Assembly: GCA_002269645.1 (NCBI GenBank)
Contig: NIVC01004445.1
Coordinates: 1 to 45,707, forward strand
Source of the DNA: Macrostomum lignano
Lineage: Eukaryota
Direction of reading: 5' to 3'
DNA length: 45,707 nt
The notes beneath the pieces were generated by a model, which saw only the letters and a program-made list of their open reading frames with translations, made no database searches and was not told where the DNA came from. A program made the position numbers and the translations under genes. Below are positions 2,421-44,343 of the stretch, one piece after another; the first letter of the stretch is position 1, and every line of letters begins with the position of its first letter.

Positions 2421-2424
2421 TTGA

Positions 2425-6041: not shown

Positions 6042-13134
<7,093 letters not shown>

Positions 13135-18132: not shown

Positions 18133-20064
18133 GTCATGTGCCCCGCAAGATTATTCAACGTCTCGCAAATCCCACAGCTCTTCAAGAAGCATTCAACTTT
18201 TTTGACATCGACCAAGACGGCCGAATCACTAGCGGCGAGCTGCAGAAGGTGCTGAAATTCCTTGGCTTCAAAACTAACGAGGACGAGGTGAAACTGATGA
18301 TCGCCGATGTTGATATTGACGGTGAGGCATTCAGTTTAGCTGGCTAGATCCATTCTATTTTAGTTTACCTCTGATTGGCTAGATTAGCAATCCATTCTAT
18401 TCCAATTGATCTGTGATTGGCTAGATTAGCAATCCATTCTAATTTAGTTTACCTCTGATTGGCTAGATTAGCAATCCATTCTAATCCAATTGATTTGTGA
18501 TTGGCTAGATTAGCAATCCATTCTATTCCAATTGATTTGTGATTGGCTAGCTTAGCAATCCATTCTATTCCAATTGATTTGTGATTGGCTAGATTAGCAA
18601 TCCATTCTATTCCAATTGATTTGTGATTGGCTAGATTAGCAATCCATTCTATTCCAATTGATTTGTGATTGGCTAGATTAGCAATCCATTCTATTCCAAT
18701 TGATTTGTGATTGGCTAGATTAGCAATCCATTCTATTCCAATTGATTTGTGATTGGCTAGATTAGCAATCCATTCTATTCCAATTGATTTGTGATTGGCT
18801 AGATTAGCAATCCATTCTATTCCAATTGATTTGTGATTGGCTAGATTAGCAATCAATTCTATTCCAATTGATTTGTGATTGGCTAGATTAGCAATCCATT
18901 CTATTCCAATTGATTTGTGATTGGCTAGATTAGCAATCCATTCTATTCCAATTGATCTGTGATTGGCTAGATTAGCAATCCATTCTATTCCAATTGATTT
19001 GTGATTGGCTAGATTAGCAATCCATTCTATTCCAATTGATTTGTGATTGGCTAGATTAGCAATCCATTCTATTCCAATTGACCCGTGATTGGCTAGATTA
19101 GCAATCCATTCTATTCCATTTGACCCGTGATTGGCTAGATTAGCAATCCACTTATAAACCCCCGCAGGCAACGGCACAGTAGAATTCAACGAGTTCCTCA
19201 AAATGATGAAGAAGTATTACAAGCAGAGTTCGGACGAGCACTCTGAGGACGCCGATATGTGGGAGGCATTTAAGGTTTGTAAAAATTAATTTGTAAGTCA
19301 ATTTAATATTTAAATAATCAGAATGAAAGAATGCAATGATCAAAACAAATAATTATATTATCTGACAGGCTTTCGATCACAATGGCGACAATTTTATCGA
19401 CTTCGCCGAGATTAAGAAGACGATGCACTTCTTAGGCGAAGAGGTCACAGACGAGGACGTCCGGTCGATGATACGAGAGGCGGATGTAGACAATGACGGC
19501 CGAATCAACTTTGAAGGTAATTTTTTCACAAATATGCTTTTTTCACACTACTTATGTCAGTAGAAAGCTAAGAAGCGAAAAACCTTAAACCAAAGGAAAA
19601 ATTTTTAAACAATAATTAAGTAACCAATTTTCTCTAACCAATCCGATATGTTGCGAAAGATACATTTGATCAATATCTCCTTTTAAGCCATTTTTACACT
19701 ACTCATGTCAGTAGGAATATAAGAAAGGACAACTTTTCTCGAACCAAAGGATTAATTTTTTTGACTCTAATTTTCTTAATAAGCCGATGTGTTGTGAAAA
19801 AACTTTGATTCAATTCATAAAAGCATTTGGTAAATATCTCCTTATTTGCCCTTTTTAACACTACTCATGTCAGTAGAAATATAGGAAACAATAAACTTTA
19901 ATCGAATGATAATTTAAAATTTTATTAACAATTTAGTTATCAATGTTTCAAATCATCTACTTTTGTCAGTAGAAATATACGAATAATAAAATATGTTTTG
20001 CTCGCCCGCAGAGTTCAAGAAAATGATGGCCGTCATGCAGCAGAAGGCCAGCAGCCAATCGTAG
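18133..20064 (+). CDS. Calmodulin-like protein, four canonical EF-hands (core exons)
   Basis: Exons 18133-18321, 19168-19274, 19369-19516 and 20012-20064 (TAG), all GT-AG and in frame: [164 protein letters not shown]. Too divergent to be canonical calmodulin, so no symbol is given. Confidence 0.95.
18341..19150. repeat. 42-bp minisatellite (TTGGCTAGATTAGCAATCCATTCTATTCCAATTGATTTGTGA)n filling a calmodulin-like intron
   Basis: About 19 units occupying nearly all of intron 18322-19167; explains ORF 18449-19201. Confidence 0.97.
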
Positions 20065-20561
20065 TGAGCCGCCGTCATCTCAGACAATCCTTCTTCTTAA
20101 ACGGCAGTGTTTTTTCTTCTTTATTCTTCATTCCTCTCTTTCTTTTTGCCCTTTTTAGACTTTAGAAGAACTGTTTCGTATGAATTATGTTTCTCCTACA
20201 AGACTATTATTGTACTGAGGCCTTTTGTGGATTGCTGAATTCTTGATGACTTGCTTAAATGTTTTCCTCTGGTTTTTCGATCTATTTCTATATATATAAT
20301 TAATATATCATAATGCCTGCTGTTAAAAAAAATTGATTTCCTATTGATTCTGTGCACTTTCCTTCGGTAAATATTTGTCAAATATGACTGCAGATTTAAT
20401 TTATATATTCAACGATTGATTTGTACACACTGATTATTCGCGCCTGCTGTAATTTTATTTTATTCTAGTCTCATTGGCATTACTGTTTGCTCACCTGGCT
20501 GGGCAGAGTGCTGGCTCTGCTTTATTTACCTGCGCTGGGATCGTGATGTTGCTTGACGGAC

Positions 20562-20565
20562 AGAT

Positions 20566-20612
<47 letters not shown>

Positions 20613-20623
20613 GGCAGGCAGGC

Positions 20624-20664
<41 letters not shown>

Positions 20665-20675
20665 GGCAGGCAGGC

Positions 20676-20708
<33 letters not shown>

Positions 20709-20715
20709 GGCAGGC

Positions 20716-20763
<48 letters not shown>

Positions 20764-20851
20764 TGACAGGCAGACAGACAGACAGACAGGCAGGCAGGCA
20801 GACAGACAGACAGACAGACAGACAGACAGGCAGGCAGGCAGGCAGGCAGGC

Positions 20852-20887
<36 letters not shown>

Positions 20888-21836
20888 TGACTGACTGACT
20901 GACTGACTGACTGACTGACTGACTTGAGTGAGTGGGTGACTGACTGACTGACTGACTGACTTGAGTGAGTGGGTGACTGACTGACTGACTGACTGACTGA
21001 CTGACTTGAGTGAGTGGGTGACTGACTGACTGACTGACTTGAGTGAGTGGGTGACTGACTGACTGACTGACTGACTGACTGACTTGAGTGAGTGGGTGAC
21101 TGACTGACTGACTGACTGACTTGAGTGAGTGGGTGACTGACTGACTGACTGACTGACTGACTGACTTGAGTGAGTGGGTGACTGACTGACTGACTGACTG
21201 ACTTGAGTGAGTGGGTGACTGACTGACTGACTGACTGACTTGAGTGAGTGGGTGACTGACTGACTGACTGACTGACTTGAGTGAGTGGGTGACTGACTGA
21301 CTGACTGACTGACTTGAGTGAGTGGGTGACTGACTGACTGACTGACTGACTGACTGACTTGAGTGAGTGGGTGACTGACTGACTGACTGACTGACTTGAG
21401 TGAGTGGGTGACTGACTGACTGACTGACTGACTGACTTGAGTGAGTGGGTGACTGACTGACTGACTGACTGACTTGAGTGAGTGAGTGGGTGACTGACTG
21501 ACTGACTGACTGACTTGAGTGAGTGGGTGACTGACTGACTGACTGACTGACTTGAGTGAGTGGGTGACTGACTGACTGACTGACTTGAGTGAGTGGGTGA
21601 CTGACTGACTGACTGACTTGAGTGAGTGGGTGACTGACTGACTGACTGACTTGAGTGAGTGGGTGACTGACTGACTGACTGACTTGAGTGGGTGACTGAC
21701 TGACTGACTGACTTATGTGAGTGGGTGACTGACTGACTGACTGACTGACTTGAGTGAGTGGGTGACTGACTGACTGACTGACTGACTGACTGACTTATGT
21801 GAGTGGGTGACTGACTGACTGACTGACAGACAGACA
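20562..21836. repeat. Compound microsatellite: (CAGA/CAGG)n switching to (CTGA)n interspersed with TGAGTGAGTGGG
   Basis: Direct inspection; the switch is at about 20885. Confidence 0.95.
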
Positions 21837-22842
21837 ACTATTTTGATACCTAAGAAACTACTATGAAAGGGCAACATTCATAAATTGGTTTTATTAGCAA
21901 ACAAGGTAAAGGGTATTTCGCATAACACAAAATATTGCAGCACTGATTATTGCAATAGCAGTTCTTGCATACTAGCAATCATTTATCAGATTGATCTAAT
22001 TGAACTCTTTTGGTATCTAGTCTGTGTAAATTCACTTGAGAAGTCACACAATATTTCTATAAAATGCATCTATTTTGAATTATCATCATTAATAAGCACG
22101 GGTGCAATTGTTCAAAACAGTCACAATCTTTACCTAATTAGCAATTTCTTTTGCACTTATAAGTCTGTGTTTTTTCTTTCAAAATCTCAGCTTTGATTTA
22201 CAAATTTGTGTCAGCGCTAAGAGGAGTGAACACTTTATTTTCCTTGTTTCAATAACTTTTACTTGTTTTTTTGTTTATCTTCATAAATATTTCCTTTGTC
22301 CCGTAACTGATATTGCTGCTAATTAGTGCATTATTGATTCAATTTATTAATATTATAATTAGTTCCAACCACAGTTGTCATGACAATAGATGCGATTAAA
22401 ATATGTTATATTTTATTATTGACAATAATACAATTAGTAAAATTGCATATAAAAATAGTTGGTCATTAGTTTTTTGAATAAATATTGACGCATAAAAATG
22501 ACTGGAATTTATTTTTTTATTAATGGAGAATTGAAGGCGATACAGTCAGAGTACTTTTAGTTGTTGCTGGGGGGGCAGGTGGTAAACATGGGGCGTCTCC
22601 TGCGCATTCGCCTGGCGACCGCGCCCTAAAAAGTACTTTTGGATTTTGTAGGATGTGTTTTTTCGCCAAATTGTCGGACAAAATCAACTGGGAAATGTTT
22701 TTTTAAGGACAAGAATCGATAAAATTTTGACGATGGGTTCAACGCGTAAATTATCCGTCTAAACTGAGTGACAATTGTCATGTTTATGATTAGAAAAATG
22801 ATTGTATATATCCAAAAAGTACGCACATTTTATCGTGGTTAC

Positions 22843-23330
22843 ATTAGCAATCCACTCTATCCAATTAGGCTATAGATTAGCAATCCACTCTATCCAATTA
22901 GGCTATAGATTAGCAATCCACTCTATATTCAATTAGGCTATAGATTAGCAATCCACTCTATATTCAATTAGGCTATAGATTAGCAATCCACTCTATCCAA
23001 TTAGGCTATAGATTAGCAAACCACTCTATATTCAATTAGGCTATAGATTAGCAAACCACTCTATATTCAATTAGGCTATAGATTAGCAAACCACTCTATA
23101 TTCAATTAGGCTATAGATTAGCAAACCACTCTATATTCAATTAGGCTATAGATTAGCAAACCACTCTATATTCAATTAGGCTATAGATTAGCAAACCACT
23201 CTATATTCAATTAGGCTATAGATTAGCAATCCACTCTATGTTCAAGTAGGCTATAGATTAGCAATCCACTCTATGTTCAAGTAGGCTATAGATTAGCAAT
23301 CCACTCTATCTAATTAGGCTATGGATTAGA
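22843..23330. repeat. 33-35-bp minisatellite (GATTAGCAATCCACTCTATATTCAATTAGGCTATA)n, related to the 42-bp family
   Basis: About 14 units; shares GATTAGCAATCCA(C/T)TCTAT with the 42-bp unit. Confidence 0.93.
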
Positions 23331-23496: not shown

Positions 23497-25771
23497 TCAC
23501 ACTCCGCCGCCTTCCTCAGCCAGAATCTGGGCCTCTTTGTCGCCGTTCTTCGCGGCCGCTTCGATGCCACTGGAGCGAAGGCAGCCGCAGACAACAGGTA
23601 GCCAGGCAATTGGCAGAGTCAGCAGCAGCGCTGCCAGGAAGGCGATGGCACGGAACACTGAAATGTGTGCGCAGTGCGGCAATGTCATCGCTAATCTAGC
23701 CAATCACAGATCAATTGGAATAGAATGGATTGCTAATCTAGCCAATCACGGATTATTTGGAATAGAATGGATTGCTAATCTAGCCAATCACTGATCAATT
23801 GGAATAGAATAGATTGCTAATCTAGACAATCACAGATTAACTGGAATAGAATGGATTGCTAATCTAGCCAATCACAGATCAATTGGAATAGAATGGATTG
23901 CTAATCTAGCCAATCACGGATTATTTGGAATAGAATGGATTGCTAATCTAGCCAATGGCGGGCTATGTCATTGGATTGCTAGTCTCACCCAGCAGTAGCC
24001 CGCGCACCATGCGCCGTCCGGCGGGGCACCCTGGCCAGAGGTTTTTCTCGCAGCCGAACACGCTGAACCGGCCAGCGTGGGTGCCCAGAGTCCAGTCCGT
24101 CAGCTTCGAGTAGAGGCAGCAGGCTCCACTGCCGCAGCTTCCTCGAAGATCAACTCCGCAGTCTCCGCAGACTTCGATTCCGCAGTTGCGGCAATGCAGC
24201 TGGTTTTGAACGCCCTCGTGGCTTGTCGGGCCTTGGCAGCTCGGACACCTTGGCTGTCCGTCTGCCGTCTGCTGCTGCTCCTCTTCTTCTGGAATCGCCT
24301 CGGCAGCAGCAGCAGCAGCCTCCGCCTCGTCAGGGACAACTGCTGGCGTCTGTTTGATGTTCTTTGATGTTCGCCGCCAGCTAGTTCGATTTGGCGGCTT
24401 CGTGGCAGCTGGCTTGTCGTTGTCTTTGACTCCCTGTTCGACCTCTTTGGTGTCGCCGCCGCTGCCTGTTGAGCTGCCCGTTGAACGCATCCGGGTTTTT
24501 CGCCAGGAGGTGCGCTTTGATTGGGACTTGTCCGCCGCCTTCTCATTAGGATTCTCATCTGCCGCCGCCTTCTCATCGGAATTCTCATCCGCAGTTGTCC
24601 TCTCATCGGGATTCTCATCTGCAGTTGTCTTCTCATCGGGATTCTCATCTGCCGCCATCTTCTCATCGAGATTCTCATCCGCAGTTGTCTTCTCATCGAG
24701 ATTCTCATCCGCAGTTGTCGACTCATCGGGATTCTCATCCGCAGTTGTCTTCTCATCGGGATTCTCATCCGCCGCCGCCGCCGTCTTCTCATCGAGATTC
24801 TCATCCGCAGCTGTCGTCTCATCGAGATTCTCATCCGCAGTTGTCGTCTCATCGGGATTCTCATCCGCAGTTGTCTTCTCATCGGGATTCTCATCCGCAT
24901 TTGCCTTCTCATCGGGATTCTCATCCGCAGTTGTCTTCTCATCGGGATTCTCATCCGCCGCCGTCTTCTCATCGAGATTCTCATCTGCAGTTGTCTTCTC
25001 ATCGGTCTTCTCACCGGAATTCTCATTCTCAATTTTCTCGTCTTGATTATTATCTGTTTTCTCACCATTAGTCTTCTCATCCGTCTTCTCATCTTCAGCT
25101 TCTTCAGCGATGTACATCGACATTGATTGGTCTTCGATAGCAGCTGCAGCTCCAGACTCAGACGTCTGTTCTCGAGCTCTTTTCGAAGCTCGCCTCCAAC
25201 CGGCTTTCATGGCAGCCTTTTTGTCCCCGCCCTGCTGCTGCTGCTCCTCTTTTGACTCATCCGCTTTTGCCGACGTCGGTTGATTGCGCGCTTTCTTTGA
25301 TGCGCGGCGCCAATTCGACTTAGCGCCAGGCGGCCCCGGTGGCGCCGGCTCCTCAGAGTCGATCTCCTCAGCCACGGCGTCGGATCTCAGTGAGTTGGTC
25401 GACGTCGCGCTGATCCGCTTTGAAGCTCGACGCGAACCAGCTCGACCAGCGCTGGCCTTCTCATCCGCCTTCTCAGTAGTCTTGTCTGCCGAAGAGTTTG
25501 CTGACATCGAAGTTAAATCTCGAACTTTTTTGGAGGTTCTTCGCCAATGTATCTTGGATTCCGACTTGTCATCGGCGGAACTATTAGTGACTCCGCCTAC
25601 CACGGATTCTACCAGATCTTCAGCCTCCTTTGTTATACTGACGTCTTCCATTTGTTTATCTACGGCGGCAGATTCGAGCGTCTTTGTCTCAGTCTTTGTT
25701 GTCGCTTTCTTAGAAGCCCGTCGCCACTGGGACTTGGCCGACGGTGTCTCGGGTTGGGCTGCTGTCGACAT
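23497..25771 (-). CDS. RNF217-like C-terminus (degenerate RING2/Rcat zinc finger + TM) fused to a long low-complexity N-terminus; predicted 658 aa
   Basis: Exon 1 is 25771-23989 (donor GTGAGA, phase 1); exon 2 is 23690-23497 (acceptor TTAG, TGA); total 1977 nt, in frame. Contains CPSCQGPTSHEGVQNQLHCRNCGIEVCGDC, then GTHAGRFSVFGCEKNLWPGCPAGRRMVRG, then hydrophobic VFRAIAFLAALLLTLPIAWLPVVCGC. This matches my recollection of the RNF217 C-terminus (CPKC...[10 protein letters not shown]...FCYRC...GDHTSNLSIFGC...RRLVRG + TM). The start codon is uncertain. Confidence 0.75.
23691..23981. repeat. 42-bp minisatellite family (inverted relative to the 18.3-19.2 kb copy) filling the intron of the RNF217-like gene
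   Basis: About 6 units of CTAATCTAGCCAATCACAGATCAATTGGAATAGAATGGATTG. Confidence 0.95.
24535..24995 (-). repeat. Coding 30-bp repeat encoding 15 copies of ADEN[P/L]DEKTT
   Basis: Counted in the 622-aa ORF; the frame is preserved throughout, including a 6-bp length variant. Confidence 0.9.
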
Positions 25772-25858
25772 TGATTGAGAGACAGAGACAGAGAGAGATA
25801 ATAGGATTCTGAGCTCGGGTCTCGCTGTCACGCAACAAGCACGCAGACGTCTCGGAGA

Positions 25859-25978: not shown

Positions 25979-26104
25979 CTGGGATTTATTATGAAAAAAA
26001 CGGATAAAAAATAATGATGGAATTTCAACTGGTTTATTTCGTGTGCAGTTGACATGGTTGTCTGATTTCGAATTTGGGATTTTTGCTGCCTGGATTTTTG
26101 GGGT

Positions 26105-26520
26105 GAGATTAGTGAGAGTGACATCAATGAGGAGGGACATTCGTGAGAGTGATATTAGTGAAAGTGACATTAGGTAGAGTGACAATAGTGAGAGTGACAT
26201 TAGTGAGAGTGATGTTAGGTAAAGTGACATTAGTGAAAGTGACAATAGGTAGAATGACATCAATGAGAGTGACATCAATGAGAGTGACATCAATGAGAGT
26301 GACATTAGTGAAAGTGACAATAGGTAGAATGACATCAATGAGAGTGACATCAATGAGAGTGACATCAATGAGAGTGACATTAGTGAGAGTGACAATAGGT
26401 AGAGTGACATCAGTGAGAGTGACATCAATGAGAGTGACATTAGTGAGAGTGACAATAGTGAGAGTGACATTAGTGAGAGTGATATTAGTGGTACTGACAT
26501 TAGTGGGAGTGACATTAGTG
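26105..26520. repeat. 15-bp minisatellite (GAGAGTGACATTAGT / GAGAGTGACATCAAT)n
   Basis: Direct inspection. Confidence 0.92.
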
Positions 26521-28893: not shown

Positions 28894-31016
28894 TCAAGTC
28901 AGCATGAGAATCTCCAGCTGCTTAAAGCTGTAGTACCAGCCGTCTGTAACGTTGCTTGGAGCATTACTAGCCCACACGATGCCCTTGGCCCTGTCTGCAG
29001 CTGATACATTCAGCGCGTATGGGTAGTTGAAGTACCGACCGAAAGGTCCACTACAGTGGCAGCACTTGTGCCAGTGAGGCAAGAAGACAACGGCACAATT
29101 AGCCGCGCAGTCACTCCATCCGCGGTCTCGGGTCATAAACTGCATATTAAAAGGGCCAAAAAGGCAGTTTCCAAGACCTGCACCAGGCACAAAGGTGTAA
29201 GCAGACAGCGTGTAGTTTGTACTTTCAGCCAGAATGTGAATGTTATCGTAGTAGGCGTAAATGTAAGTGTCGTCCCAGTACAGCAGGTCAACGCGGAACC
29301 GGTTGTTACTGGGCTGAGCGCTGGTCCTGGTGTGCAGCCACTCCAGGCCTGGCAAAGTAAATAATGTGCTACATGCTGGATTGCATTTGCTGGCTGAATA
29401 AGCTCACGCCAAAAAAGACACATCGTAAGAAAAGTCCAAATTAAGAAAGACACATTGCAAACAAGTTCACGTCGCTAAAGGCACTTCGTCAAAGACATCC
29501 AAGACGCATCGTCAAAGACACATCGGCAAAGACACACACAGGCAAAGACACATAATCCAAGACACATCGTCAAAGACACATCGGCAAAGACACACACAGG
29601 CAAAGACACATAATCCAAGACGCATCGTCAAAGACACATAGGCAAAGACACACACAGGCAAAGACACATAGGCAAAGACACACACAGGCAAAGACACATA
29701 ATCCAAGACACATCGTCAAAGACACATCGGCAAAGACACACACAGGCAAAGACACATAATCCAAGACGCATCGTCAAAGACACATAGGCAAAGACACACA
29801 CAGGCAAAGACACATAGGCAAAGACACACACAGGCAAAGACACATAATCCAAGACGCATCGTCAAAGACACATTGTCAATCAAGTCCACATCGGCAAAGG
29901 CAGAGCTAGCATTTTACTAGCTCGAAGCTTCAAAAGCATGAAATTTCACATCATTGAACAGTCTTGACATTCATGCACTCCCGCCAGCTAAAAACTTGAA
30001 GTTGGATACTTTTTGAGCTTGAAAAAATATTAAACTTGTGAAACATTTAGTGTGACTAACCAACAAAGTAGTTGTCGTGATAAGTCCCGAAGCCGGCCTT
30101 GTAGTCGGCCCAGAGCCGGTCGAAGCTCAAAGCGTCCGACACTCGAAGATTGACCGTCTCGAAGCACTGCTGGGTTAGGACCGTGTAGAACTCCTGCATG
30201 AGTTTACAGTGGACGAGTATAACTCTAAGTTCTAACTATAATGTAAATTATGTGCGAAAATACATACAGAATCCTCTGTAAAATAACGTTGCTCACATAG
30301 ACGGCAAACTCAGGGCTGCCTGGTGGCTGCCCGAACCAGCGGCACAGCGGATAGTCGTTGAGCAGTGAGCAGTTGCTGGAGTTGAACAGGATTCCGCGAC
30401 ACGTCGACGGCGTAGCGCTGCACTTGGCAACGCAGCCAATGAGCGTCGAGACAGTCGGCTCTGGCACCAGACGGGTGGCGAAGATCTTCGCCGAGTTATT
30501 GGGAATGTACACTCGCTTTCGAGTCACGCTTCGAGCCGCAAGGTATTCTGACAAAAAAAATAACAGAACGCGTCACAAAAGTTAAGCAATGTCTTTGAGG
30601 CTAGTTTCAAATGTAGCGCTTCCACCCTGCGCGCTTAGGATACTGAGTACTTATATGAGACCGCACGCTTACTAAGCATTCTTTGTCCCCAATGTCTCAC
30701 CAGTGTGAAAACTGAGCAGTCTGTCATTGAAGACCAGAGCTGACTGTCCACCGCAGGACGCCTTCCAGCCAAGTAGCACCGTCTCCGCGGTGAACAGCTG
30801 GCAGACGCGGGCAGCAGTGAAGATCAGCGCTGCACACCATGACTGCTTGGTGCAGAGCATTGCGCACTGCTGCTTGTTGTCAGACTGCTGCACAGTGAGT
30901 TGCGCGGAGCTGGGGTCAGATGGACACCCAGCTAAACTGGTCAGCTTGAACTGACAGCCCACGGCTCCTGTTGACTGCCAAGTTGTCAGGCACAGCAGCA
31001 TGAAAATCAACAACAT
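28894..31016 (-). CDS. Secreted protein: signal peptide + two PAN/apple domains + fibrinogen C-terminal (FReD) domain; predicted 384 aa
   Basis: Exons 31016-30701, 30547-30297, 30193-30061 and 29348-28894 (TGA), all GT-AG, 1155 nt, in frame. Signal MLLIFMLLCLTTWQSTGA; PAN motifs QQCAMLCTKQSWCAALIF...CQLF and IGCVAKCSATPSTCRGILFNSSNCSLL; FReD motifs SFDRLWADYKAGFG..NYFVGLEWLH, FRVDL, QFMTRDRG..DCAANCA, GIVW, KQLEIL. Confidence 0.9.
29465..29885. repeat. Intronic compound repeat built from CAAAGACACA subunits
   Basis: Direct inspection; lies in the last intron of the PAN-FReD gene. Confidence 0.92.
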
Positions 31017-31880: not shown

Positions 31881-32521
31881 GGCTTTAGCACCAGGGCTTT
31901 AGCACCAGGGGCTTTAGCACCAGGGGCTTTAGCACCAGGGGCTTTAGCACCAGGGGCTTTAGCACCAGGGGCTTTAGCACCAGGGGCTTTAGCACCAGGG
32001 GCTTTAGCACCAGGGGCTTTAGCACCAGGGGCTTTAGCACCAGGGGCTTTAGCACCAGGGGCTTTAGCACCAGGGGCTTTAGCACCAGGGGCTTTAGCAC
32101 CAGGGGCTTTAGCACCAGGGGCTTTAGCACCAGGGGCTTTAGCACCAGGGGCTTTAGCACCAGGGGCTTTAGCACCAGGGGCTTTAGCACCAGGGGCTTT
32201 AGCACCAGGGGCTTTAGCACCAGGGGCTTTAGCACCAGGGGCTTTAGCACCAGGGGCTTTAGCACCAGGGGCTTTAGCACCAGGGGCTTTAGCACCAGGG
32301 GCTTTAGCACCAGGGGCTTTAGCACCAGGGGCTTTAGCACCAGGGGCTTTAGCACCAGGGGCTTTAGCACCAGGGGCTTTAGCACCAGGGGCTTTAGCAC
32401 CAGGGGCTTTAGCACCAGGGGCTTTAGCACCAGGGGCTTTAGCACCAGGGGCTTTAGCACCAGGGGCTTTAGCACCAGGGGCTTTAGCACCAGGGGCTTT
32501 AGCACCAGGGGATTTAGCACC
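31881..32521. repeat. Near-perfect 15-bp tandem array (GGGGCTTTAGCACCA) x ~42
   Basis: Direct inspection; only the terminal units vary. Explains the LKPLV ORF. Confidence 0.97.
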
Positions 32522-32991: not shown

Positions 32992-33293
32992 GCATCTCAG
33001 CAACTCCCTCTTTGAGCCCATGGCATCTCAGCAACCCTCCATTGAGTCATAGCATCTCAGCAACCCCCCATTGAGTCATGGCATCTCAGCAACTCCCCAT
33101 TGAGCCATGGAATCTCAGCAACTCCCCATTGAGCCATGGAATCTCAGCAACCCCCCCCATTGAGTCATTGCATCTCAGCAACCCCCCATTGAGCCATGGC
33201 ATCTCAGCAACCCCCCATTGAGCCATGGCATCTCAGCAACCCCCCATTGAGCCATGGCATCTCAGCAACCCCCCCATTGAGCCATGGCATCTA
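32992..33293. repeat. ~29-bp minisatellite (GCATCTCAGCAACCCCCCATTGAGCCATG)n
   Basis: About 10 units. Confidence 0.92.
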
Positions 33294-33660
33294 AGAAACT
33301 CTTAAAAAGTTAGCAATTAAGTATGGTTGACGCATCGTTTTGTTAACGTTATTTAAAACATACGGAAGCCTATATGATATAATTATTTTCCAAGAAAATA
33401 AGTTGTAAACTTTTAACCGATTTATTCTAAAATTACAAAAAGTGCCTATCATTTAGCGAATGAATTCTGTAGCTAAACCGTATTTGCCTTCAAGCTCAAT
33501 ATGTAGAAAGTTTAAAAGCTTTTCTTAGGAAGAATTTTTCAAGTCAGCAAGCGGCCATGAGACTCGTTGCACGCTTCAGCAAGTCACGCCCGCGGGCAAA
33601 AGAGGCAGTTTTACTCGAATACCGAATACTTAGTCACTCAACTGAGCTCTCTTCCTCTTC

Positions 33661-33724
33661 GTATCTATCTATCTATCTATCTATCTATCTACCTATCTAT
33701 CTACCTATCGATCTATCTTTCTAC

Positions 33725-33769
<45 letters not shown>

Positions 33770-33972
33770 CATCTATCTATCTATCTTTCTATCTATCTAT
33801 CTATCTATCTATCCATCTATCTATCTATCTTTCTGTCTGTCTATCTATCTATCCATCCATCTATCCATCTATCTTTCTGTCTATCTATCTATCTATCCAT
33901 CTATCTATCTATCCATCTATCTATCTATCTATCTATCTATTTATCTATCTATCTATCCAACTATCTATGTAT
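33661..33972. repeat. (TCTA/TCCA)n microsatellite
   Basis: Direct inspection. Confidence 0.95.
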
Positions 33973-34689
33973 CTAGTCATATCTTCTCAACAAATATTTA
34001 ATCTTTCTGCACGAATCCACATTCAGTTTCCACTTCAGTGACTGTATTCATTGGCTTGAGTTCCCACAAAAGATTTATTCTCTGTCTTCAACTCTCGGTG
34101 GAACTTCTCACATTTCTTTTACTTTCCTTCTGAGCTATTTTTTTCAAATATTGCTCACTGCCTTCAGCAATAGCTCCTCAGCAATAATTGGTTAGCTACT
34201 TCTTGACTGAAGTTGGAGCCCATGCGCCAAGTGACTCACATAGAGTGCAAAGAAAGGCAGATCGATCCAATCCAATCAGACTCTCCGCCTCGCACGCTGA
34301 GCTGCCCCGGCTTCATCTGAAAGAGCTCAAGACAGTTCCTTCAATAGTCTCTGCCCCCGTCCCCTGTCTGTCCATCCGAGATCTCAAATTTTCGCTCGAA
34401 CTGTCTTCTAAAAATCCTCTATGTTTGCCTTCACCGAAAATTCTTTATTTACTGTGCCAATCCTGACTGGGAAGCTATTGACTTTTAAAGCAGTCATTCT
34501 GCGCTGTTTTTTTATTGAGATCGAATTTCGGTAATTACCTTCTAGACTGGATAGATAATGTGTTCTATTTTCTGTCACGTTTAATCGGGTTAGGAAGAAA
34601 ACATGATTACATGAACACTGGTTTGGAATTATTTCTAAGCAAGAAATTGTCAGAAAAAGGCGAGGAGGGTGGGGAGGAAGGAGAGAGAA

Positions 34690-35792
34690 GAGGGAGAGTG
34701 CTGGAGGAGAGGGAGAGGGCAGGAGGAGAGGGAGAGTGCAGGAGGAGAGGGAGAGTGCAGGAGGAGAGGGAGAGGGCAGGAGGAGAGGGAGAGGGCAGGA
34801 GGAGAGGGAGAGTGCAGGAGGAGAGGGAGAGGGCAGGAGGAGAGGGAGAGGGCAGGAGGAGAGGGAGAGTACAGGAGGAGAGGGAGAGTGCAGGAGGAGA
34901 GGGAGAGGGCAGGAGAAGAGGGAGAGTGCAGGAGGAGAGGGAGAGGGCAGGAGGAGAGGGAGAGGGCAGGAGAAGAGGGAGAGTGCAGGAGGAGAGGGAG
35001 AGGGCAGGAGGAGAGGGAGAGGGCAGGAGAAGAGGGAGAGTGCAGGAGGAGAGGGAGAGTGCAGGAGAAGAGGGAGAGTGCAGGAGGAGAGGGAGAGGGC
35101 AGGAGAAGAGGGAGAGTACAGGAGGAGAGGGAGAGGTCAGGAGAAGAGGGAGAGGGCAGGAGGAGAGGGAGAGTACAGGAGGAGAGGGAGAGTGCAGAAG
35201 TGAGGGAGAGGGCAGGAGAAGAGGGAGAGTGCAGGAGGAGAGGGAGAGGGCAGGAGGAGAGGGAGAGGGCAGGAGAAGAGGGAGAGTGCAGGAGGAGAGG
35301 GAGAGGGCAGGAGAAGAGGGAGAGTGCAGGAGGAGAGGGAGAGTGCAGGAGAAGAGGGAGAGGGCAGGAGGAGAGGGAGAGGTCAGGAGAAGAGGGAGAG
35401 TGCAGGAGGAGAGGGAGAGGTCAGGAGAAGAGGGAGAGTGCAGGAGGAGAGGGAGAGTGCAGGAGAAGAGGGAGAGTGCAGGAGGAGAGGGAGAGTGCAG
35501 GAGAAGAGGGATAGTGCAGGAGGAGAGGGAGAGTGCAGGAGAAGAGGGAGAGTGCAGGAGAAGAGGGAGAGTACAGGAGGAGAGGGAGAGTGCAGGAGAA
35601 GAGGGAGAGTGCAGGAGGAGAGGGAGAGGGCAGGAGGAGAGGGAGAGGGCAGGAGAAGAGGGAGAGTGCAGGAGGAGAGGGAGAGTGCAGGAGAAGAGGG
35701 AGAGTGCAGGAGGAGAGGGAGAGGGCAGGAGGAGAGGGAGAGGGCAGGAGAAGAGGGAGAGTGCAGGAAGAGAGGGAGAGGGCAGGAGGAGA
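34690..35792. repeat. Purine-rich ~18/19-bp minisatellite (GCAGGAGGAGAGGGAGAG[G/T])n
   Basis: Direct inspection; explains the RRRGRVQEERE ORFs. Confidence 0.95.
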
Positions 35793-37737
35793 CAGATACT
35801 CATGTAGAAAGTGTGGGGAAGAGAAGTCTAAACAGAGAGCCGAAGAGTGGGAGCTGCAAGACAAGTCAGAGACAGGCAGGGGGTTCCGGCACAAGGCATG
35901 ATGATTAGCTGCATCATCGATTAGCGGAACTCAAATCGAGGGCCAAAATTCGATGGGTGCTCAGTGCGAGTATAGAAAATCAATAATTTTTATTTAAAAC
36001 ACAACCCATACTTTACCAAGTACCGAAATGCCATATGGAGTTTCCCAAAGGAGAAGAAAATGATGAACAAGTTTCCAGGTCCCCTGTCGGAGTTATAAAT
36101 CATTTTCAAAAGAAAAACAGAAAAAACACCCAGCAACTGAGCGGAGCTGAGAGTCCGGAGACATGCGATCACAGTTTTCTTATCGAGCTGTGAGATCGCT
36201 TTTTCCCAGAAAAGAGGATCGAGCTGGAGTCTCGTCGAATGAGCGAGTGCGAGCGAGTGAGTTCCTTTGCTACAGCTTTGCACCCTCGGGGGAAATGTTT
36301 GGCCCAGCTGAATAAGTGGTAGAAGAGCGGCGCTTTTAGTCAATATAGCCGCTCTTCAAGCCCCGATAGCTACTCGTACATAAAACGAAGTGCACGCATT
36401 GGGGATTAGCTTCCTTTTATATACGAGCAAAATTTTAATCCATGACTAGTAAACTCTTGGCGTTGTTTGCAGCTCAAGAATTCGAAAATTGCTCTATAGT
36501 TTCTCGGATACAAATTGAGATCAAAAGTACATCTACACTCGCCGATTCTGTCAAGTTCGCCTCGAGGCCAATGTTTTTGCGCTGCAAAATGCATTAGCAA
36601 AATTGAGAGCGTTCAGTTTTTTTACCAGGCCCTGAATTTAGAAAATCTCAACTTTTGGAATTCCGAATGGCGGACAGAATGAGCATACGCATTGTCCGAA
36701 ATGCACGGTTTTGAACGAGTATCGGTCGCTGAATGAGGTTCCGCCATAGACCAATTTCGGCTGGGAAGAATCTGTGCTAGAAACGAAAGAAGATGACATT
36801 TCGACGCAAATTTTAAGTGCACCCTGGAAACGAAAGAAATATTTTTTTCGCATGTAATTTTCCGCTTTGAAAGTGCGTTCCATTTTCCATAAGACTCGTC
36901 GTTGGTAGCCAAGCCTGTTCGCTAATCCGAGGCCAAGACACAATGGCTAAAGATTTTCCGTGATCAGTCAAATTGAACTGCCTGATATTCTTCACACAGA
37001 CGCTTCTCGCTTGTCGAATTCCTGTTTGTAGAAAGAGAAGAAAAAAGTAAGGGGACTAACCCGCATGTAGATCGAGAAGGAAGGTCAGAAGAGAGTGAAA
37101 GCAAACACCACAGCAACTGCTAGGTATTGATCGAACAAGGGGGGGGAGAGAAAAAAGCAGAGAATGCTTTGCGCTTTCGAGTCAGCTTTACAGGCAGTCG
37201 TATGGCTGCCTGCCAAGCAAGTGCCCGCTCTTTTTTCTCAGCATTTTCCCCCAAGAAAAGTTCCGTCAGTCATTTTGCTCTTGGCTCAAGTGCGTCCATT
37301 GTTATCAACAAATCATTAAGTATTGGATTTTGAGAATGATTTTCTTGACTTGATCACTCCTTCTCACAGTTGTGCAAGCCTTGGACCATAGACACGCAAT
37401 AGCTGATTTCATTGGAAAAACATGAATATGACGACGAATAAGCAGTCATAAAAGCTTTACTACAGGTCAAGATTTACCGGATGATAAGCAATGGAAAAGT
37501 ACGACCTAATTTTGGTTGCCATCGAGAGAGGTGACAGTGCTCATCAGATTGTGCGATGGCTGTGTGTAAAGAGAAAAGCTTTGAAATCTGTTGTCTGTTT
37601 GACTGTTTCGATTCGTTTTTTCATAACAATTTCATAAAGATGCTTATTAGGAAGGCCAAGCTTACACTCAGAGTCAGCAGGTCATTCCATGGCTGTTCCA
37701 AAGCAACATTATATATAGGCGACTGGCTAATACTTTT

Positions 37738-37743
37738 TTTATT
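37738..37743 (-). terminator. Candidate polyadenylation signal (AATAAA) of the LRR gene
   Basis: TTTATT on the + strand, about 210 nt past the stop at 37954. Confidence 0.3.
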
Positions 37744-37953
37744 CAACAAGAGCTTCAATTTAAAAAACCGCCATTCATTGGATTTGTACATAAAAAATCC
37801 TTTCAGTTAACTGCTTGCTGTGTATATTTCTGAGGTCCGTCTTAGCAGGATCAGAGACTTTCGAACTGGTAAAATGGTTAAATATTGATGAGAGGTACAG
37901 GAGGAAGAAGAGCTACATGATGCAGTTAAAAAACCTAGGAGCACAGTTAGTAG

Positions 37954-40400
37954 TCACACTTCGATAATACATTTCGACGTCGCACTGAATCGGTCACGTC
38001 TAGATCGAGCCGAAGCTGCTGCGGTTGTCGATGTTGGCGAAGCTAGCTGCTGCCGCTGCTGCACCAGCACGGAGCCCGTGCTGCTCCCGACGTCTCTCTC
38101 TCCGTCGTCGTCTTCGCCGGCGCTGTCACTTTCGTCGCCGCCGCGGCACAGCGCCGCGTACACGATAGCAGCAATCAACAGGATAAACAAGGACGCGGCG
38201 ACAGCAATGACGGCTGGAATCCGGCTAAACTGTGACTCGCAGCTGGCCAGCTGAAGGTCCAGCACTGGCCGGTTGCGCAGAGCGCTGGGTGAGGCGCAGC
38301 GCAGTTGACGCGAGTGCAGCCCGACCACGGACACGTTGGTTGCCAGGGCCCAACGCCAGAAGTGACGCAGTCGGCCGCAGTCGCAGCGCAACGGATTGCC
38401 AACCAGGTCGATTCTGCGCAGGCCGAACAGCGAGCGCATGGCGTCAGCGCTGACACTGGAGATTCGCGCCGACCGGATCGACACGTCGCGCAGGTGGCTG
38501 GCTGAACGGAAGGCGTCGCTGTCGATGTCTCTGATCGGATTGTAGTCAAGCGCCAGACGTCGTAGAGAACTCGGAAAGACAACGCCGGGCCCGGGCGGCT
38601 GGCGGATGTTGCAGCGGCTGAGCTCAAGCTCTTCAAGCTCGTTGAACTCGCGGAACAGGCCCCAGTTGTTGTTTTTTAGGTAGGCAAAGATTTCGTAGCG
38701 GTTGAGCTTGAAGACGCGCAGAGAGCTGGCTAGCCTATCCAGGCTGGACTTGAACAGCGCAAGAGTTCGCGCCTCCATGGGGTTGTCGCTCAGGTCCAGC
38801 AGCTGCACATTTGTGCTGTGTAGGAATGCCTGCGTATCGATAGTACTGATGTTGTTCACGCCGACGTGTAGTTTGCTGAGGCCAGCGGAGCCGTAGTCAG
38901 CGAGTATCTGCAGTCGGTTGCCCGTCATGTCCAGCTCTTCCAGCTCCCTGGCTCCCAGGTCCAGTGGCTCAATCTGAGGAAATCCATTCCAGCTGAGGTT
39001 GAGAAAGCGCAGATGCGGACAGTCCCGGTCAGGTTGTCCGGAATCTGGCTGATCCGGTTGCGACTGAGGTCGAGTCGCAGCAGTTTCGGCGAGGCGGCAA
39101 AAATGCCAGCCAGATGCTCGCGCCGCAGCTCGTTGCCGCCGAGGAGCAGCTCAGTGAGGCCCGAAATTTGCTGCCGAGTTGGTCGGAAATCCTTCAGGCC
39201 GTTGTCTCGAAGATCCAGCGACTGGAGGCTGGCGAAGCGAGTAAACACTGATGGGTGAAGATTGTGCAGCGAGTTTCGGCCTAAACTGAGCCAACGGAGA
39301 TTCGCCGGCAGGCGGGTTGGGTCAACGAAAATTGTTAAAAGATTGTGCGACAGATCGAGCCGCATCAGGTTGTTGAGATCGGATAAGTTTGGTATTTCGG
39401 TTAGACGATTGTCGGACAGATCCAGCTCAGACAGTCGCGTCAGACTGTTTAGAGCGCCATTCTCCACGGTTGCTATGGCGTTGCTAGCTAGGCTGAGGCG
39501 TCTCAGGCTGTGCAGGCGGAGGTCGCGGCCTCGGAATGCGTAGGCGGGCAGGCGGGCCAGTCCAAGCCTTCGCAGACGCAGTTCGTCAAGATCACAGTCG
39601 GCACTGACAGACCTAAGCAGTGGTTTGAGCGCCCCGCTACCCGTGTAGGACAGAGCCGGGTTGCCGGATAGGTCTAGCAGGGCCGGACAGCTCGCCACGG
39701 GCCAGCGAAATCTGCTGTCCACCGACTCTAGCAGATTGTGCGATAGATCTAAACGAGTGTCGCGATTCAACTGACGAGCCGTCATCACGGGCGGTCTTTC
39801 TAAGGCGTCGGTTGATGACCCTGCGGAGGTCTGAGACTGAGAAGTTACCGAGCGCAACCGATTGTGCGACAAGTTCGCCTCGAACCAGACTGGTAAATTA
39901 TCGAGCAAGTCAAACGGCAGCACGCTCAGCATGTTGTGACTCAAATCGATGATTCGCAGATTAACGCAACTGCTTAGATCTTTGGCGTCCAGGTTCTGCA
40001 GTCGGTTGTGCGATAGTCTCAGTTCAACAAGATTAGGCAACGCGGTGAATAAATTCTTGTTGAGCTTGGTGATTGCGTTCTTCGATGCGGACAGAACACG
40101 CAGATGAGGAGCGGACGCGGCAATGCTGACTGGCAAGTCTGCTAATCGGTTGTCGTCCAGATTCAGCTCAAGCGTGGCAGGGTCCAGCAGGTCGCAGGGC
40201 ACCTCCGTGAGACCTTTTCCGCTGCAGGTAACTGACAGAACCGCTGTGCTTGGCGCCACCGCGGGGTGGGGCAGCTCGCACCAGCACCTGCTCGGGCAGC
40301 GGTAGCCCAGGTCGCCCGCCGCGATGACATCCGCCAGCCGAAGCGATGACGCTTCGTAAAGCTGCAGCAGGTGGACCAGCAGCTGCAGCAGGGCTGGCAT
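37954..40400 (-). CDS. Intronless LRR type-I membrane receptor (SP-LRRNT-~20 LRR-LRRCT-TM-short tail, no TIR); one 1-nt frameshift at 39024-39026
   Basis: ORFs 38925-40400 and 37954-38928 join into one 815-aa protein if a G is restored (ACC GGG GAC gives IPDNLTGDCPHLRFLNLSWN, restoring LRR spacing). LRRNT CPSRCWC...VTCSGKGLTEVP; LRRCT NPLRCDC...LRCASPSALRNRPVLDLQLASC; TM IPAVIAVAASLFILLIAAIVYAALC. Could be a pseudogene or an assembly error. Confidence 0.88.
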
Positions 40401-42684
40401 CTATGGCCCTAAATTATTCAAGCCTTTCACGACATCGCAGCGCGCTTGCAGCACGACCAATGAAGTAGTTTGTTATACGAATCTCTTCAACTATTGCTGG
40501 TTATTTAAGAAATGTAGAACTCCATACCTACATGTAAGTAACAAAATTGTTTTTATTCTGCTCTTAAAGAAACATGGCATGGAGAAGCTGAAGCAACTGT
40601 CTCTCAGCCAATGGCAGCGCGTTTACTGGACAAGCCATGCCTGTAAATACCGACTTCCATTGGGTTTAGCTAGCAGCTTAATGAAGTGGCCTTTAGGGAG
40701 GCATAGGAACCTTTTTCTAACCCCAAAATGCAATTTTGGAATGTGGGTGGATCGGATGTCGCACAGCTTGGCATTATTTTGCCATTATTTTCTGTAGGAA
40801 AAATGCCTGAAAATCTTTTCTGCGCACTTCAGAGGCAAAACAATTAGTAGCACTGCTTTAATAACCTTTTGTTGCAACGGTCAAGCGTTCTGCTGATTAA
40901 TATATCACTGAAGAAATATTAAATGACGCTTATTCAAGCTTTAGACAGTGGACTAATGCACTGGTATAAAACTATATTCGTGCAAGTATAATACGTAGGA
41001 ATGAAAAAAGCATGGTTCATTAATACTATAGGACAGCTGCAATATGCGCACAAGAAGGAAGCAGACAATTACACCTGCTGTGGATCGCCTTAACAGAGAG
41101 AGAGAGGAAGTCTTCTAGGGGAAAAACTGATTGGTCCAATTAAAAAGGCAGCTCCTTTTTACAAGGCGCAAGAGGCATCTATAGGAGTCTGGGGAGTTTC
41201 TTACTTTACTGACTATACTAGGGAGGCTTCTGCTAACGCATAGCAGCCACCGCTCATTAATTATGCTTTGATGACGCGTGCTCAGCAGTGGTGGATAGTA
41301 GTGCATTACTAGCTGCGCATTTTCTCAAAGAGCCGTGGAACTAGCATACTAGTTTAATATCCACGAGCATCTGATTGCTTAACTTGCTTTAATTCACAAA
41401 CTTGGAAAAGTATCTTCAACCTAAAGGAATCGGAGACACTCGTATATATGCTGTCATTATTTCATTATATACCTATGTAATGTTCCAGCACAGTTAATAA
41501 AGTATTTTCGCAGACAATATTTATTTGCGATCGCTTCGAAGCTTCATCCATGGTAAACGGATTTGCTGGGGCAATCAGCACGAACTCTGCAGAAGTCTGC
41601 CAGCCCGCCACACGTCCTTCGGCCATCTCCTCCCTGGCCTTCTCCTTAGCCTGAATCAAACCGAACGAGAAGGCAAGTAATAATTTTTTTCGTCCTCGCA
41701 TATAATCAATCGAATTATGACGGTTGCCGATCTCCCAGAACCGTACGCCCATGCCCCTTGTGAGCAAAAAACTTTTCTACACTTAGTCAGTAGCCTCAGC
41801 TCGCTGAGCAATAATTCGACTTTCTTTTTCTGCACATCCGATGAAGCATGTGCTGAGTGAGTTTTCTTAGAATATTCCGCCGGACCAAAAAGTTTTTTTC
41901 TTGCTGTAAACTTCTGCTTGACCTCGTTATGCTGCGGAATTCCTTCGACGGAATTCTGGCGAAAAATGTTATGGGCATGTAGTAAAAGTTTTACGAAGCC
42001 TGCAGGTTACTTTTTAGTCCGAGGTCAACACAGCTCTCACTGTGCCCGGCAGTTGCATACTAATCTTCCATTAGCTGTGTGACAACTGTCTCTCTTGATT
42101 GCCTCGCAAAAAAAAATATTGAAAGCGACTTTACACCGACTGGAACCTGATTAGTTTTGCATACTACTGAGAAATGTTTTGCGCCCTGTAATCATCATCC
42201 CATCGATTGTACTAATGATGAAAAATCAATTAGAAATTTTTATCTTGCGATTAATTTGTCAGTCCATTTCTGTTCTCAGTTGCTTATTGAGAGCAGGGAG
42301 TTAAAGTTTCAAGCTAACTATACAGCACTTGCGTTGCTGTCAATAACGCATTTATGCAACTATGAGACTATACGAGAAGTTACCAACTTATTTCAATTTT
42401 CCATAATACTTTATGCTGCAAATCAATACAAGTTTATAACCAAACTTAGCCAAGACTGCTGAGTTGAAGAGCACATACTGCCAGTCATTTTTTGCTAGTC
42501 ATTATTCGCTCGCAGCGCTAAAATTGATCTGTAGTATCGCGTGAAGCGCCTAGTTGTTGGGAAGGCTATACAGCTGTTAGTATTTTTAACAAATGCGCAA
42601 CGATGCTGACTACTTAGCGTCTTATCGTATAAATAGTAGTATTTACCCCAGTTTTTCCAAAGTTTCTACAATAAGTCAAGCAAT

Positions 42685-44343
42685 CTAAATCTTCGTAGTA
42701 ACAGATTCTTCCACCGGTATGTCGGTGCGGCTTTCCTCGGACGCGGTGAGACGCCTCCTTCTCTTGATCGCTGCCTCCAATAAGTCGTGCATCAGTTCGA
42801 AAAGCTCGCAGAATGTCAGTAAAGACATTCCTTAGTAGAGGCCCATTATTCCGCCTACATCAGAAAAGAAATTAGCGAAGCCATAGTCGATTGACAGAGT
42901 CACCCGATTGCAATTCTGCCGATGCGGTCTGAAGGTCACCTTGAGCAGATTGGCGTTGATGAAGGCTCCTGCAGTGCTTAAATTGGCACCCGCCAGGTAG
43001 CTTAGAGTGGGTTTACTCAAGTTTTGAGATCGAGCGTCGTTCAAAGCCTGATCGATTGTGCTAGCAACGAATGGCTCGATAGAGCTGTAAGTTGGCCAGT
43101 CCGAGTTGGAAATGATCGGATCGTAGTTGATGATTCTGCACGGGGCCAGCTTGCTGCATTGCGCTTGAGCCAATTCGCTGACCCGAGACAGATGGTCATT
43201 GTCGGTTAAGCGATCTGCCGCTAAATCGCCAACCTGTTGCAAAAAGTTGCTCTCATCGCCGGAAAGGTTGAACAAGTAGCGCCGACCTCTAACTGGCCAG
43301 GGCAGTGGACCGGCGTCCCCGCTGAGGTTCATGAGTGCCTGATACTGCTTGTGATACTCCAGGTAGTAGCAGTAGGAGTAGCTGTAGCTGTGGTTGTAGG
43401 GTTCTTGCGAGTACGGATTCACAAACTACAAATCGAAACTCGATGGACTGTACAGCTGCTCGGTCATGCCAATCTCCACAGTGTGATATCGACCTGGACC
43501 AAGCGAGAATGACGTCACGAATTCGGTCGGGCACTCGCCCAGTGGGCACAGATAGATTCGAACTCCAGCCCTACGATCCGGGTCGTCGAAATCCATTCGC
43601 GACAAAGACCAATCCGAGACGGGGATGGGTGCTCCACCGGCGAACACCTTGGCTAGAATTGGCGGACCAGATGGCGAGGCCGAGAAAAAATTTTTCGTCC
43701 GTCAGTAGCGTGACGGTGAGTCCGCCGGATGGGCCACTTTTAGACAGGTTGACTTTGATCAACTGATAAAATCATTCAGGACCCATCGCAAACGGCGGAG
43801 AAACACAGGATGGTGGAACTGGCTTGCTGTCACGGGATCAGAAGTAGGCAAGCCGTAATTGGAAACGTAGGAAACATCCGACGCAATCAGTGACTGCTCA
43901 AGCCTGTGCGCGAATGCGTCCACAAGCAGCCGGTACTGGAGCGACTGGATGTATGCGAAGGTGTACCAGCGCTCGACCTCCATCGGGTCCGAGCTGATAT
44001 TCGCGGCCAGGATGATACGAGAAAACACCTCGGATGTGAGAAACAGCTGACAGTTGATTTCGGACACAGTATCGTTTATCGCCGCATAACTGGCAGATAC
44101 GGCGATCTCAAAGCAGGCATATATATCGGGGTACTTGAACAGTACAGCGTTGGTGCCCAACGAGCTGGTCACCTGACCGCTATTCAACTTGATAACGAAA
44201 TCTGCGAAGCCTTTTAAGAACAGACCCAAGGATGCGAAATAAAGAAGTAGCCAGGAAAGCCTCACGTACAGAGGCTTTTTACTTATAGTACGACTCAATC
44301 CGTGAGTCGTGGTCTGTTTCGGAGCTACTTTAACTTGCTGCAT
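42685..44343 (-). pseudogene. Intronless DEG/ENaC (ASIC-family) sodium channel, disrupted
   Basis: N-terminal TTHGL motif, TM1 RLSWLLLYFASLGLFL, FKYPDIYAC, SGPSGGLTVTL, AGVRIYL, LLKVTF, and TM2 FANFFSDVGGIMGLY*GMSLLTFCELFEL. Lesions: -1 at 43768-43771, +1 at 43685-43695, TAG at 43426-43428, TAA at 42832-42834. Natural stop TAG at 42685-42687. Confidence 0.9.

Follow-up and report, generated by a model that had tools for sequence, protein, structure and literature searches.

Whether a gene descended from an RBR ubiquitin ligase can shed both its active site and its entire RING1-IBR half and still encode a protein is the question raised by a locus in the flatworm Macrostomum lignano. The locus lies on contig NIVC01004445.1, all 45,707 nucleotides (nt) of which were analyzed (hereafter the window), and consists of a two-exon gene on the minus strand that carries no GenBank annotation and holds an open reading frame (ORF) of 647 codons. 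An original prediction, drawn from the letters of the window alone, had assigned positions 23497-24260 to a truncated, catalytically dead relative of the RBR ligase RNF217 that retains its Rcat (RING2) domain and a transmembrane (TM) segment. The explanation that we favor, and consider somewhat better than evenly likely, is that the gene is a lineage-specific, non-catalytic paralogue of the M. lignano RNF217-type ligase gene that still codes for protein, its likeliest role being that of an adaptor or competitor.

The 30-residue string from which that prediction started, CPSCQGPTSHEGVQNQLHCRNCGIEVCGDC, is indeed encoded on the minus strand at 24247-24158, inside the ORF 23963..25831, and is followed by GTH...SVFGC and then by RRMVRG. 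The first ATG of this ORF is at 25771, and the frame runs stop-free up to a GT donor at 23988 (context CTG CTG G/GTGAGA, the slash marking the splice junction), such that coding exon A (23989..25771) comprises 594 full codons plus one base and covers everything from the N-terminal arm through the Rcat-like domain to the juxtamembrane motif. A 331-nt GT..AG intron of phase 1 (23658..23988) splits a Val codon as G/TG; its acceptor AG ends at 23658 in the context ...CATTTCAG/TG. Coding exon B (161 nt, 23497..23657) completes the hydrophobic anchor and adds a CGC motif and a mildly acidic tail of 27 residues before terminating in TGA (23499-23497). The TM segment that had been proposed is therefore reached from RRMVRG by one splice, and the originally assigned interval takes in the intron and exon B together with the 3' part of exon A.

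The spliced translation of 647 amino acids (aa) begins with a 508-residue arm (aa 1-508, 24248..25771, delimited by composition and a motif scan), followed by a Cys-rich domain at aa 509-574 (24050..24247) identified as Rcat-like by alignments, by a hidden Markov model (HMM) and by an AlphaFold2 (AF2) model, then by RRMVRG, a hydrophobic segment of about 30 residues and the 27-residue tail. Most of the intron is occupied by a 42-bp minisatellite in 6.4 copies (23690..23956, no strand assigned; Tandem Repeats Finder, TRF). The same unit also builds an array at 18449-19201, in opposite orientation and 4.5 kb away, and a different 35-bp array (22843-23329) begins about 170 nt downstream of the stop codon.

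An exhaustive phmmer search of 1.8 billion representative proteins matched five proteins in all, four of which are RNF217-like (E-values of 1.1e-6, 2.4e-6, 4.5e-4 and 8.7e-4), namely the transcript-derived P0002, KAL8624630.1 of Nucella lapillus, XP_076466524.1 of Babylonia areolata and PAA88544.1 of M. lignano itself. Every one of these four matches is a single colinear stretch of roughly 90-115 residues that runs from the first Rcat CxxC into the membrane anchor. The top match, a bacterial repeat protein (P0001, E 4e-8), was rejected as spurious, as its score sums weak repeats and its cysteines are unaligned. RNF144 was not among the significant hits of this search, and a word-indexed protein search with the C-terminal domain returned no match.

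The resemblance also emerged from comparisons of other kinds. An HMM built from seven RNF217s, with the window protein excluded, scored the spliced protein at 52.3 bits and passed through the catalytic loop without a gap, and pairwise BLASTP against PAA88544.1 gave 63.9 bits (E 5e-17) with 31% identity over 104 aa and one indel. Among solved structures, the family profile picked out the Rcat domains of ARIH1, ARIH2, CUL9, HOIL-1 and parkin (E 1e-9 to 1e-5), and a profile search added four RNF217 fragments, among the matches listed. The Pfam model IBR_1 reached 18 bits on the domain, below its cut-off of 27, and FYVE and B-box models were similarly weak. RBR Rcat matches were thus obtained by phmmer, by the family profile and by the RNF217 HMM, as the original prediction had anticipated, and the RNF217 RING2 string that it quoted agrees with the real RNF217 fragments P0007 and P0008 (CP[RQ]...[KQ]CNTNFCYRC).

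Beyond the zinc domain, the protein carries the post-Rcat motif LGxH..S.FGC..P..RR.(I/V)RG and then a hydrophobic anchor, with G, H, S, G, C, R, R and G falling on columns that are invariant in all sequences. In the juxtamembrane RRMVRG (23999..24016; family consensus RR-L-I/V-RG, from alignments), R587, R590 and G591 occupy columns invariant across all aligned sequences. Hydropathy reaches its maximum of 2.4 at aa 591-617, and a PVV within the anchor aligns with the snail sequences; a C-terminal membrane anchor is accordingly predicted from hydropathy together with a predicted helix. Taken at the level of sequence, the resemblance to an RNF217 Rcat plus anchor is beyond what chance should produce, and the gene is best classified as a member of the RNF217 subfamily by descent.

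The pattern of what this domain has kept and lost is uneven. All eight zinc ligands predicted from the alignment are retained (C509, C512, C527, C530, C535, C538, H565 and C574), in agreement with the earlier proposal that the zinc-binding cysteines and the downstream His and Cys persist. The column of the catalytic Cys, by comparison, is occupied by Gln522 (CAA, 24208-24206) and that of the catalytic His by Gln524 (CAG, 24202-24200), with no gaps nearby to blur the assignment, and the HMM alignment gives the same result as the other alignments. The former active site is thus Gln522-Asn523-Gln524 (24200..24208), and the catalytic loop reads V-Q-N-Q-L in the window protein as against G-C-x-H-M in all eight homologues covering that column. 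Both substitutions had been called in the original prediction; the active-site position is without a Cys in every alignment, and the whole stretch from the first CxxC to the third zinc ligand of the domain is devoid of further cysteines. Turning a TGY codon for Cys into the CAA codon for Gln takes three base changes, so the loss of the active site is old.

Snail, flatworm, fish and spider sequences, seven catalytic RNF217s in all, have 29 invariant columns in common, of which the window protein keeps 17. These include all eight zinc ligands and only nine of the 21 others (Fisher p = 0.009). Of the 12 lost columns, the catalytic loop accounts for six (K, I, G, C, H and M) and the aromatics F/Y of FCYxC for two. 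The loop between zinc ligands 6 and 7, VDLRGSCGSGACCLYSKLTDW (24092..24154, from alignments), is Cys/Gly-rich, exceeds its counterpart in the same-species ligase by about 13 residues, and contains three extra cysteines. Snail RNF217-like proteins carry a similar insertion of about 13 residues in the same loop, while the same-species flatworm ligase and the fish and spider proteins do not; the insertions in the snails and in the window protein are probably independent, marking a permissive loop.

We found nothing in the window that could supply the missing half of an RBR ligase. The first 508 residues contain no Cys and a single His, so that no zinc finger is possible there, and Pfam detected neither a RING nor any other domain in this arm, its sole IBR-type signal falling on the C-terminal domain. 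Searching the window by tblastn with four full-length RNF217-like proteins recovered the Rcat exon alone, a RING1-IBR HMM run against the six-frame translation of all 45.7 kb (including the 21 kb upstream) gave a best E of only 2.4, and a CxxC regular-expression scan found no candidate exon upstream, where the same strand holds an unrelated fibrinogen-like exon, a leucine-rich repeat (LRR) gene and ASC/ENaC exons. The proposed absence of RING1 and IBR upstream thus held for the window as a whole. Of the features of an RBR enzyme, namely RING1, IBR, an Rcat two-zinc scaffold (C4 + C3H, predicted) and the catalytic Cys/His, the window protein has only the scaffold (1/4). The sequence thus shows it not to be an RBR ligase: an E2-binding RING1, a thioester Cys and a catalytic His are all absent, and it can neither recruit E2~ubiquitin via RING1 nor form a ubiquitin thioester.

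What stands in place of RING1-IBR is an arm rich in A/E/T/D/K/S, with seven [W/S]R[RK][AT][SR][KM][KRN] motifs, six of them RRxS-like. The arm shows no similarity to the N-terminus of PAA88544.1, and no homologue of aa 1-229 was found among 5.8 billion proteins. Within it, an in-frame 30-bp tandem repeat of 15.6 copies encodes DEKTTADENP units (24539..25013, minus strand; TRF). The sole length variant among these units is +6 bp, and the differences between them are spread evenly over the codon positions (8/11/11), making the repeat uninformative on selection.

A separate intact gene, whose existence the original prediction had left to be checked, is present in M. lignano. PAA88544.1 and PAA59392.1 (BOX15_Mlig030936; 617 and 618 aa) are RING1-IBR-Rcat-anchor proteins in which the catalytic Cys is present. 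Exon 1 of the intact gene (aa 1-578) encodes the N-terminus, RING1, IBR, Rcat and linker, and exon 2 encodes the anchor. The intron of 606 nt between them (...CGC GGA ACA CTC TTC G/GTAGGT and ...CCAG/TC CTA) is of phase 1 and splits a Val codon as G/TC. The introns of the window gene and the intact gene therefore share position and phase, three residues past RG, with a Val codon split in both, and the Babylonia gene has the same intron (RGSVL g/gt) plus an extra intron inside Rcat. Because the two-exon layout matches that of the intact gene, whose RING1, IBR and Rcat all sit in exon 1, the window gene is, judging from its layout, a whole-gene paralogue and not a 3' fragment awaiting upstream exons. 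The two genes thus share two exons, a phase-1 intron, a colinear Rcat, LGxH..S.FGC, RR.VRG and an anchor, and differ in that the window gene has lost RING1, IBR and the catalytic Cys and His, begins with 508 unrelated residues of low complexity, carries the 13-residue Cys/Gly loop insertion, and ends in a longer, mildly acidic tail instead of a short and basic one.

The divergence between these copies is markedly lopsided. Over the Rcat-linker region, catalytic RNF217s are 49-67% identical to one another across phyla, compared with 29-37% between the window protein and all of them, its nearest relative being the same-species gene. In Tajima relative-rate counts rooted with fish, spider or snail, 17-20 unique changes fell to the window protein and 2-5 to PAA88544.1 (p = 6e-4 to 3e-3), and by these counts the window copy is strongly accelerated. 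The reading frame, meanwhile, is longer than its composition would be expected to allow: none of 20000 shuffles of the first 252 codons was stop-free, and only 0.4% of shuffles were for the codons at 24538-23990. An open frame combined with intact splice sites and a full set of zinc ligands is suggestive of selection on the gene. Constraint on coding is also argued by the neutral expectation, since decay to 31% identity should have broken the frame, yet only one indel is seen in 104 residues. We place the case for a constrained coding gene modestly, but not far, above even.

Structure modeling gave a compatible picture. The AF2 model built with an alignment had a mean pLDDT of 77.6, with values of about 80 over the Rcat-like part, about 90 in the anchor helix and below 50 in the Cys/Gly loop; a model from the single sequence (pLDDT 54) was judged useless. 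When the former was searched against the PDB with Foldseek, the top matches were all RBR Rcat domains, with weak E-values (0.1-1), as expected of a domain that is a 45-residue zinc knot. A single-sequence PDB search returned noise only (a designed Kelch protein, a FYVE domain and NleG).

Together, these features outline how such a gene could have arisen and what its product could do. A duplicate of an RNF217-type gene would have kept the two-exon layout, the Rcat zinc scaffold, the juxtamembrane motif and the anchor, while losing the entire RING1-IBR half and exchanging both the catalytic Cys and His for Gln. Its product would be a membrane-anchored, BRcat-like zinc module beneath a 508-residue disordered acidic arm with RRxS-type basic motifs, lying, presumably like its parent, on the cytosolic face of the membrane. 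In line with the scaffold or decoy role that was originally proposed, such a protein might act by binding and not by catalysis, occupying the membrane site, partners or substrates of the intact RNF217-like ligase without ubiquitinating anything; alternatively, it might pair with the intact ligase through its anchor, by analogy with the self-association of RNF144A. The RRxS-like motifs of the arm resemble basic kinase sites and could render it phospho-regulated. A bolder version of this scheme, which we regard as unlikely, is that of a natural pseudo-RBR, in which a stand-alone, Cys-less membrane Rcat regulates the RNF217 pathway as a dominant-negative partner or as a substrate/ubiquitin adaptor, with its arm under kinase control.

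Less probable than a functional paralogue, to our minds, and nonetheless to be taken seriously, is a decaying or never-expressed duplicate that drifts in a repeat-rich genome and whose open frame is a remnant aided by stop-poor, low-complexity sequence. Several observations weigh in its favor and against continued coding. The gene is missing from the GenBank annotation of the assembly, which was RNA-seq guided (PMC5730564), its own protein was not found in our searches and the unspliced ORF is not on record; this absence counts for little, since the nearby fibrinogen-like and ASC-like genes also appear unannotated. The gene is an orphan, in that phmmer found no orthologue with the same changes among the 1.8 billion representatives, and it has evolved fast. 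Its arm is likewise an orphan of low complexity, with a 30-bp repeat whose copies lack codon-position bias; four of the five other frames around this repeat also hold long ORFs, tandem repeats lie within the coding sequence, and a minisatellite fills the intron. Moreover, the M. lignano genome is more than half repeats and has undergone large recent duplications (PMC5730564), decaying gene copies being frequent in genomes of this kind, and a neighboring LRR gene on the same contig is frame-shifted relative to a 100% identical twin. A relic, however, should hold stops in its non-repeat parts, where the shuffles almost never leave a frame open and all 647 codons are nevertheless open. Both splice sites and the intron phase are intact, the zinc ligands are all kept while 12 of the 21 other invariant positions have changed, a single indel separates the gene from its parent at 31% identity, and the frame has survived an active-site loss that, requiring three base changes, is old. 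It is this combination that inclines us towards the non-catalytic, still coding paralogue.

The other explanations fare considerably worse. RING1-IBR might be encoded by exons outside the window, or the Rcat exon might belong to another transcript than the upstream ORF; only 21 kb upstream are visible, leaving more distant exons out of view, the ATG is preceded by a possible AG acceptor, M. lignano has trans-splicing and polycistronic precursor transcripts (PMC5730564), and an annotated Babylonia isoform joins a short 5' exon straight to an Rcat exon. We nevertheless hold such a gene-model artefact to be very improbable, given that a single, uninterrupted exon encodes RING1, IBR and Rcat in the intact M. 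lignano gene, that the window Rcat, from its first CxxC onwards, follows the 508 upstream codons in frame and without a break, that unrelated genes on the same strand (fibrinogen-like, LRR and ASC) fill the upstream 21 kb, and that no RING1-IBR signal was detected anywhere in the window; a RING1 supplied from elsewhere would, besides, not restore the catalytic Cys. A non-canonical enzyme, using for example a Cys of the GSCGSGACC loop as nucleophile and supplied in trans with ubiquitin by the RING1-IBR half of the intact ligase, would make sense of the three extra cysteines in the inserted loop, and the self-association of RNF144A through its TM domain, known to us from a title cited in PMC12317654, makes a mixed oligomer with the intact ligase conceivable. 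This idea we consider more doubtful still, as the Cys-rich loop lies elsewhere in the fold than the catalytic loop and is modeled as disordered (pLDDT <50), and the entire catalytic loop, and not the Cys alone, has been replaced. Faintest of all is an unrelated treble-clef zinc finger of FYVE-like or B-box-like type, an assignment invited by HCRNCG...CGDC, which resembles the FYVE signature, by Pfam E-values in the same range as those of the IBR matches (FYVE 0.015-0.05, zf-B_box 0.08) and by the LM5-1 FYVE structure, which aligns over 36 residues at E 0.24. These scores are far under their cut-offs (14-16 bits against 27.8 for FYVE), the WxxD and RVC elements are absent, leaving HCRNCG alone to resemble the signature, and neither family would account for an RNF217-like match that continues for more than 100 residues past the finger, through LGxH..S.FGC..P..RR.VRG and the anchor, or for an intron position common to RNF217-like genes.

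The predicted product of the non-catalytic paralogue can be set beside several known proteins and domains. Vertebrate RNF217 is reported to be the E3 ligase for ferroportin degradation (PMC8295296); it has in common with the window protein the subfamily-defining motifs within and after the Rcat (P0007, P0008), and differs from it in that the window domain is 30% identical and lacks the catalytic residues, RING1 and IBR. The BRcat domain adopts the two-zinc fold of Rcat without a catalytic Cys and without ubiquitination activity (PMC3940038). In functional terms, the window domain would now be BRcat-like, having the fold without the Cys; by descent it is an Rcat, as it aligns with the parent Rcat, linker and anchor and not with IBR, and it stands alone. 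RNF144A and RNF144B likewise place an Rcat before a C-terminal membrane anchor, and a title cited in PMC12317654 (Ho et al. 2015) describes RNF144A ligase activity as regulated by self-association via the TM domain; TM-mediated interference is plausible by this analogy, although the subfamily is a different one and the window protein conserves the RNF217-specific juxtamembrane motif. A further counterpart is the 169-aa "RNF217-like" XP_076466524.1 of Babylonia areolata, which likewise lacks RING1-IBR, being made up of a partial Rcat and the anchor. It differs in keeping the catalytic Cys, in missing the first CxxC and in being an isoform of a full-RBR locus (CM085429.1, 10001-24447), where a short 5' exon is joined to the second Rcat exon and the full-RBR exon 1 lies at about 10175-11986; it may be a real short isoform or a prediction artefact.

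A limited literature search found no description of a stand-alone, Cys-less, membrane-anchored Rcat, nor of an RBR pseudo-ligase derived from Rcat alone. If expressed, the gene would offer a clean natural experiment on the Rcat scaffold and the RNF217 juxtamembrane/anchor module in the absence of catalysis, as well as a handle on how RNF217-type ligases recognize partners at the membrane, in an animal in which RNA interference and transgenesis are working. If it is not expressed, it would be another decaying duplicate in a repeat-rich, recently duplicated genome. In either case, it represents a 647-codon open frame missed by RNA-seq-guided annotation.

The remainder of the window contains several further genes and repeats. 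An LRR/LRRCT/TM gene (37957-40400, minus strand) encodes a protein 100% identical to PAA69847.1 (815 aa, NIVC01001284.1) and is split into ORFs of 491 and 324 aa by a one-base frame shift near 39024, with GenBank calling the first 491 aa only. This shift may reflect an indel error in long reads, or the copy may be genuinely disrupted. The ORF 38925-40400 is identical to a database protein whose 90% cluster consists of M. lignano proteins. Window positions 32992-45707 are 95-99% identical to NIVC01001284.1:127578-150025, with a 3.5-kb insertion or deletion at about 45109, and this shared block is a recent duplicate or an alternative haplotype. If colinearity continues, a twin of the RNF217-like gene would be expected on NIVC01001284.1 about 7-9 kb past position 150,025.

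Also on the minus strand are a Fibrinogen_C exon (28894-29355; Pfam E 1e-10) and, upstream of it, a Cys-rich ORF without a Pfam match (30672-31016); an amiloride-sensitive sodium channel (ASC) gene is represented by two exons on this strand (42832-43422 and 43759-44343). Neither the fibrinogen, the Cys-rich nor the ASC ORFs had an exact database protein match, and the annotation of the twin contig NIVC01001284.1 is without an ASC gene, indicating that annotation is sparse here. Long terminal repeat (LTR) retrotransposon fragments occupy 1020-2946 (minus strand): one ORF encodes gag and contains a CCHC zinc knuckle, another, without a Pfam match, may be the protease, and a third encodes reverse transcriptase. 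As these parts are on separate ORFs, the element has probably been broken up. The gag ORF (2428-2976) ends in TCPSCQ, a hexapeptide core as at the start of the Rcat-like domain, which we took as coincidence. Finally, micro- and minisatellite arrays with long, spurious multi-frame ORFs lie at 8362-9673, 20474-21837, 26103-26520, 31885-32520, 33557-34001 and 34515-35908, consistent with the 15% of the M. lignano genome that consists of simple and tandem repeats (PMC5730564).

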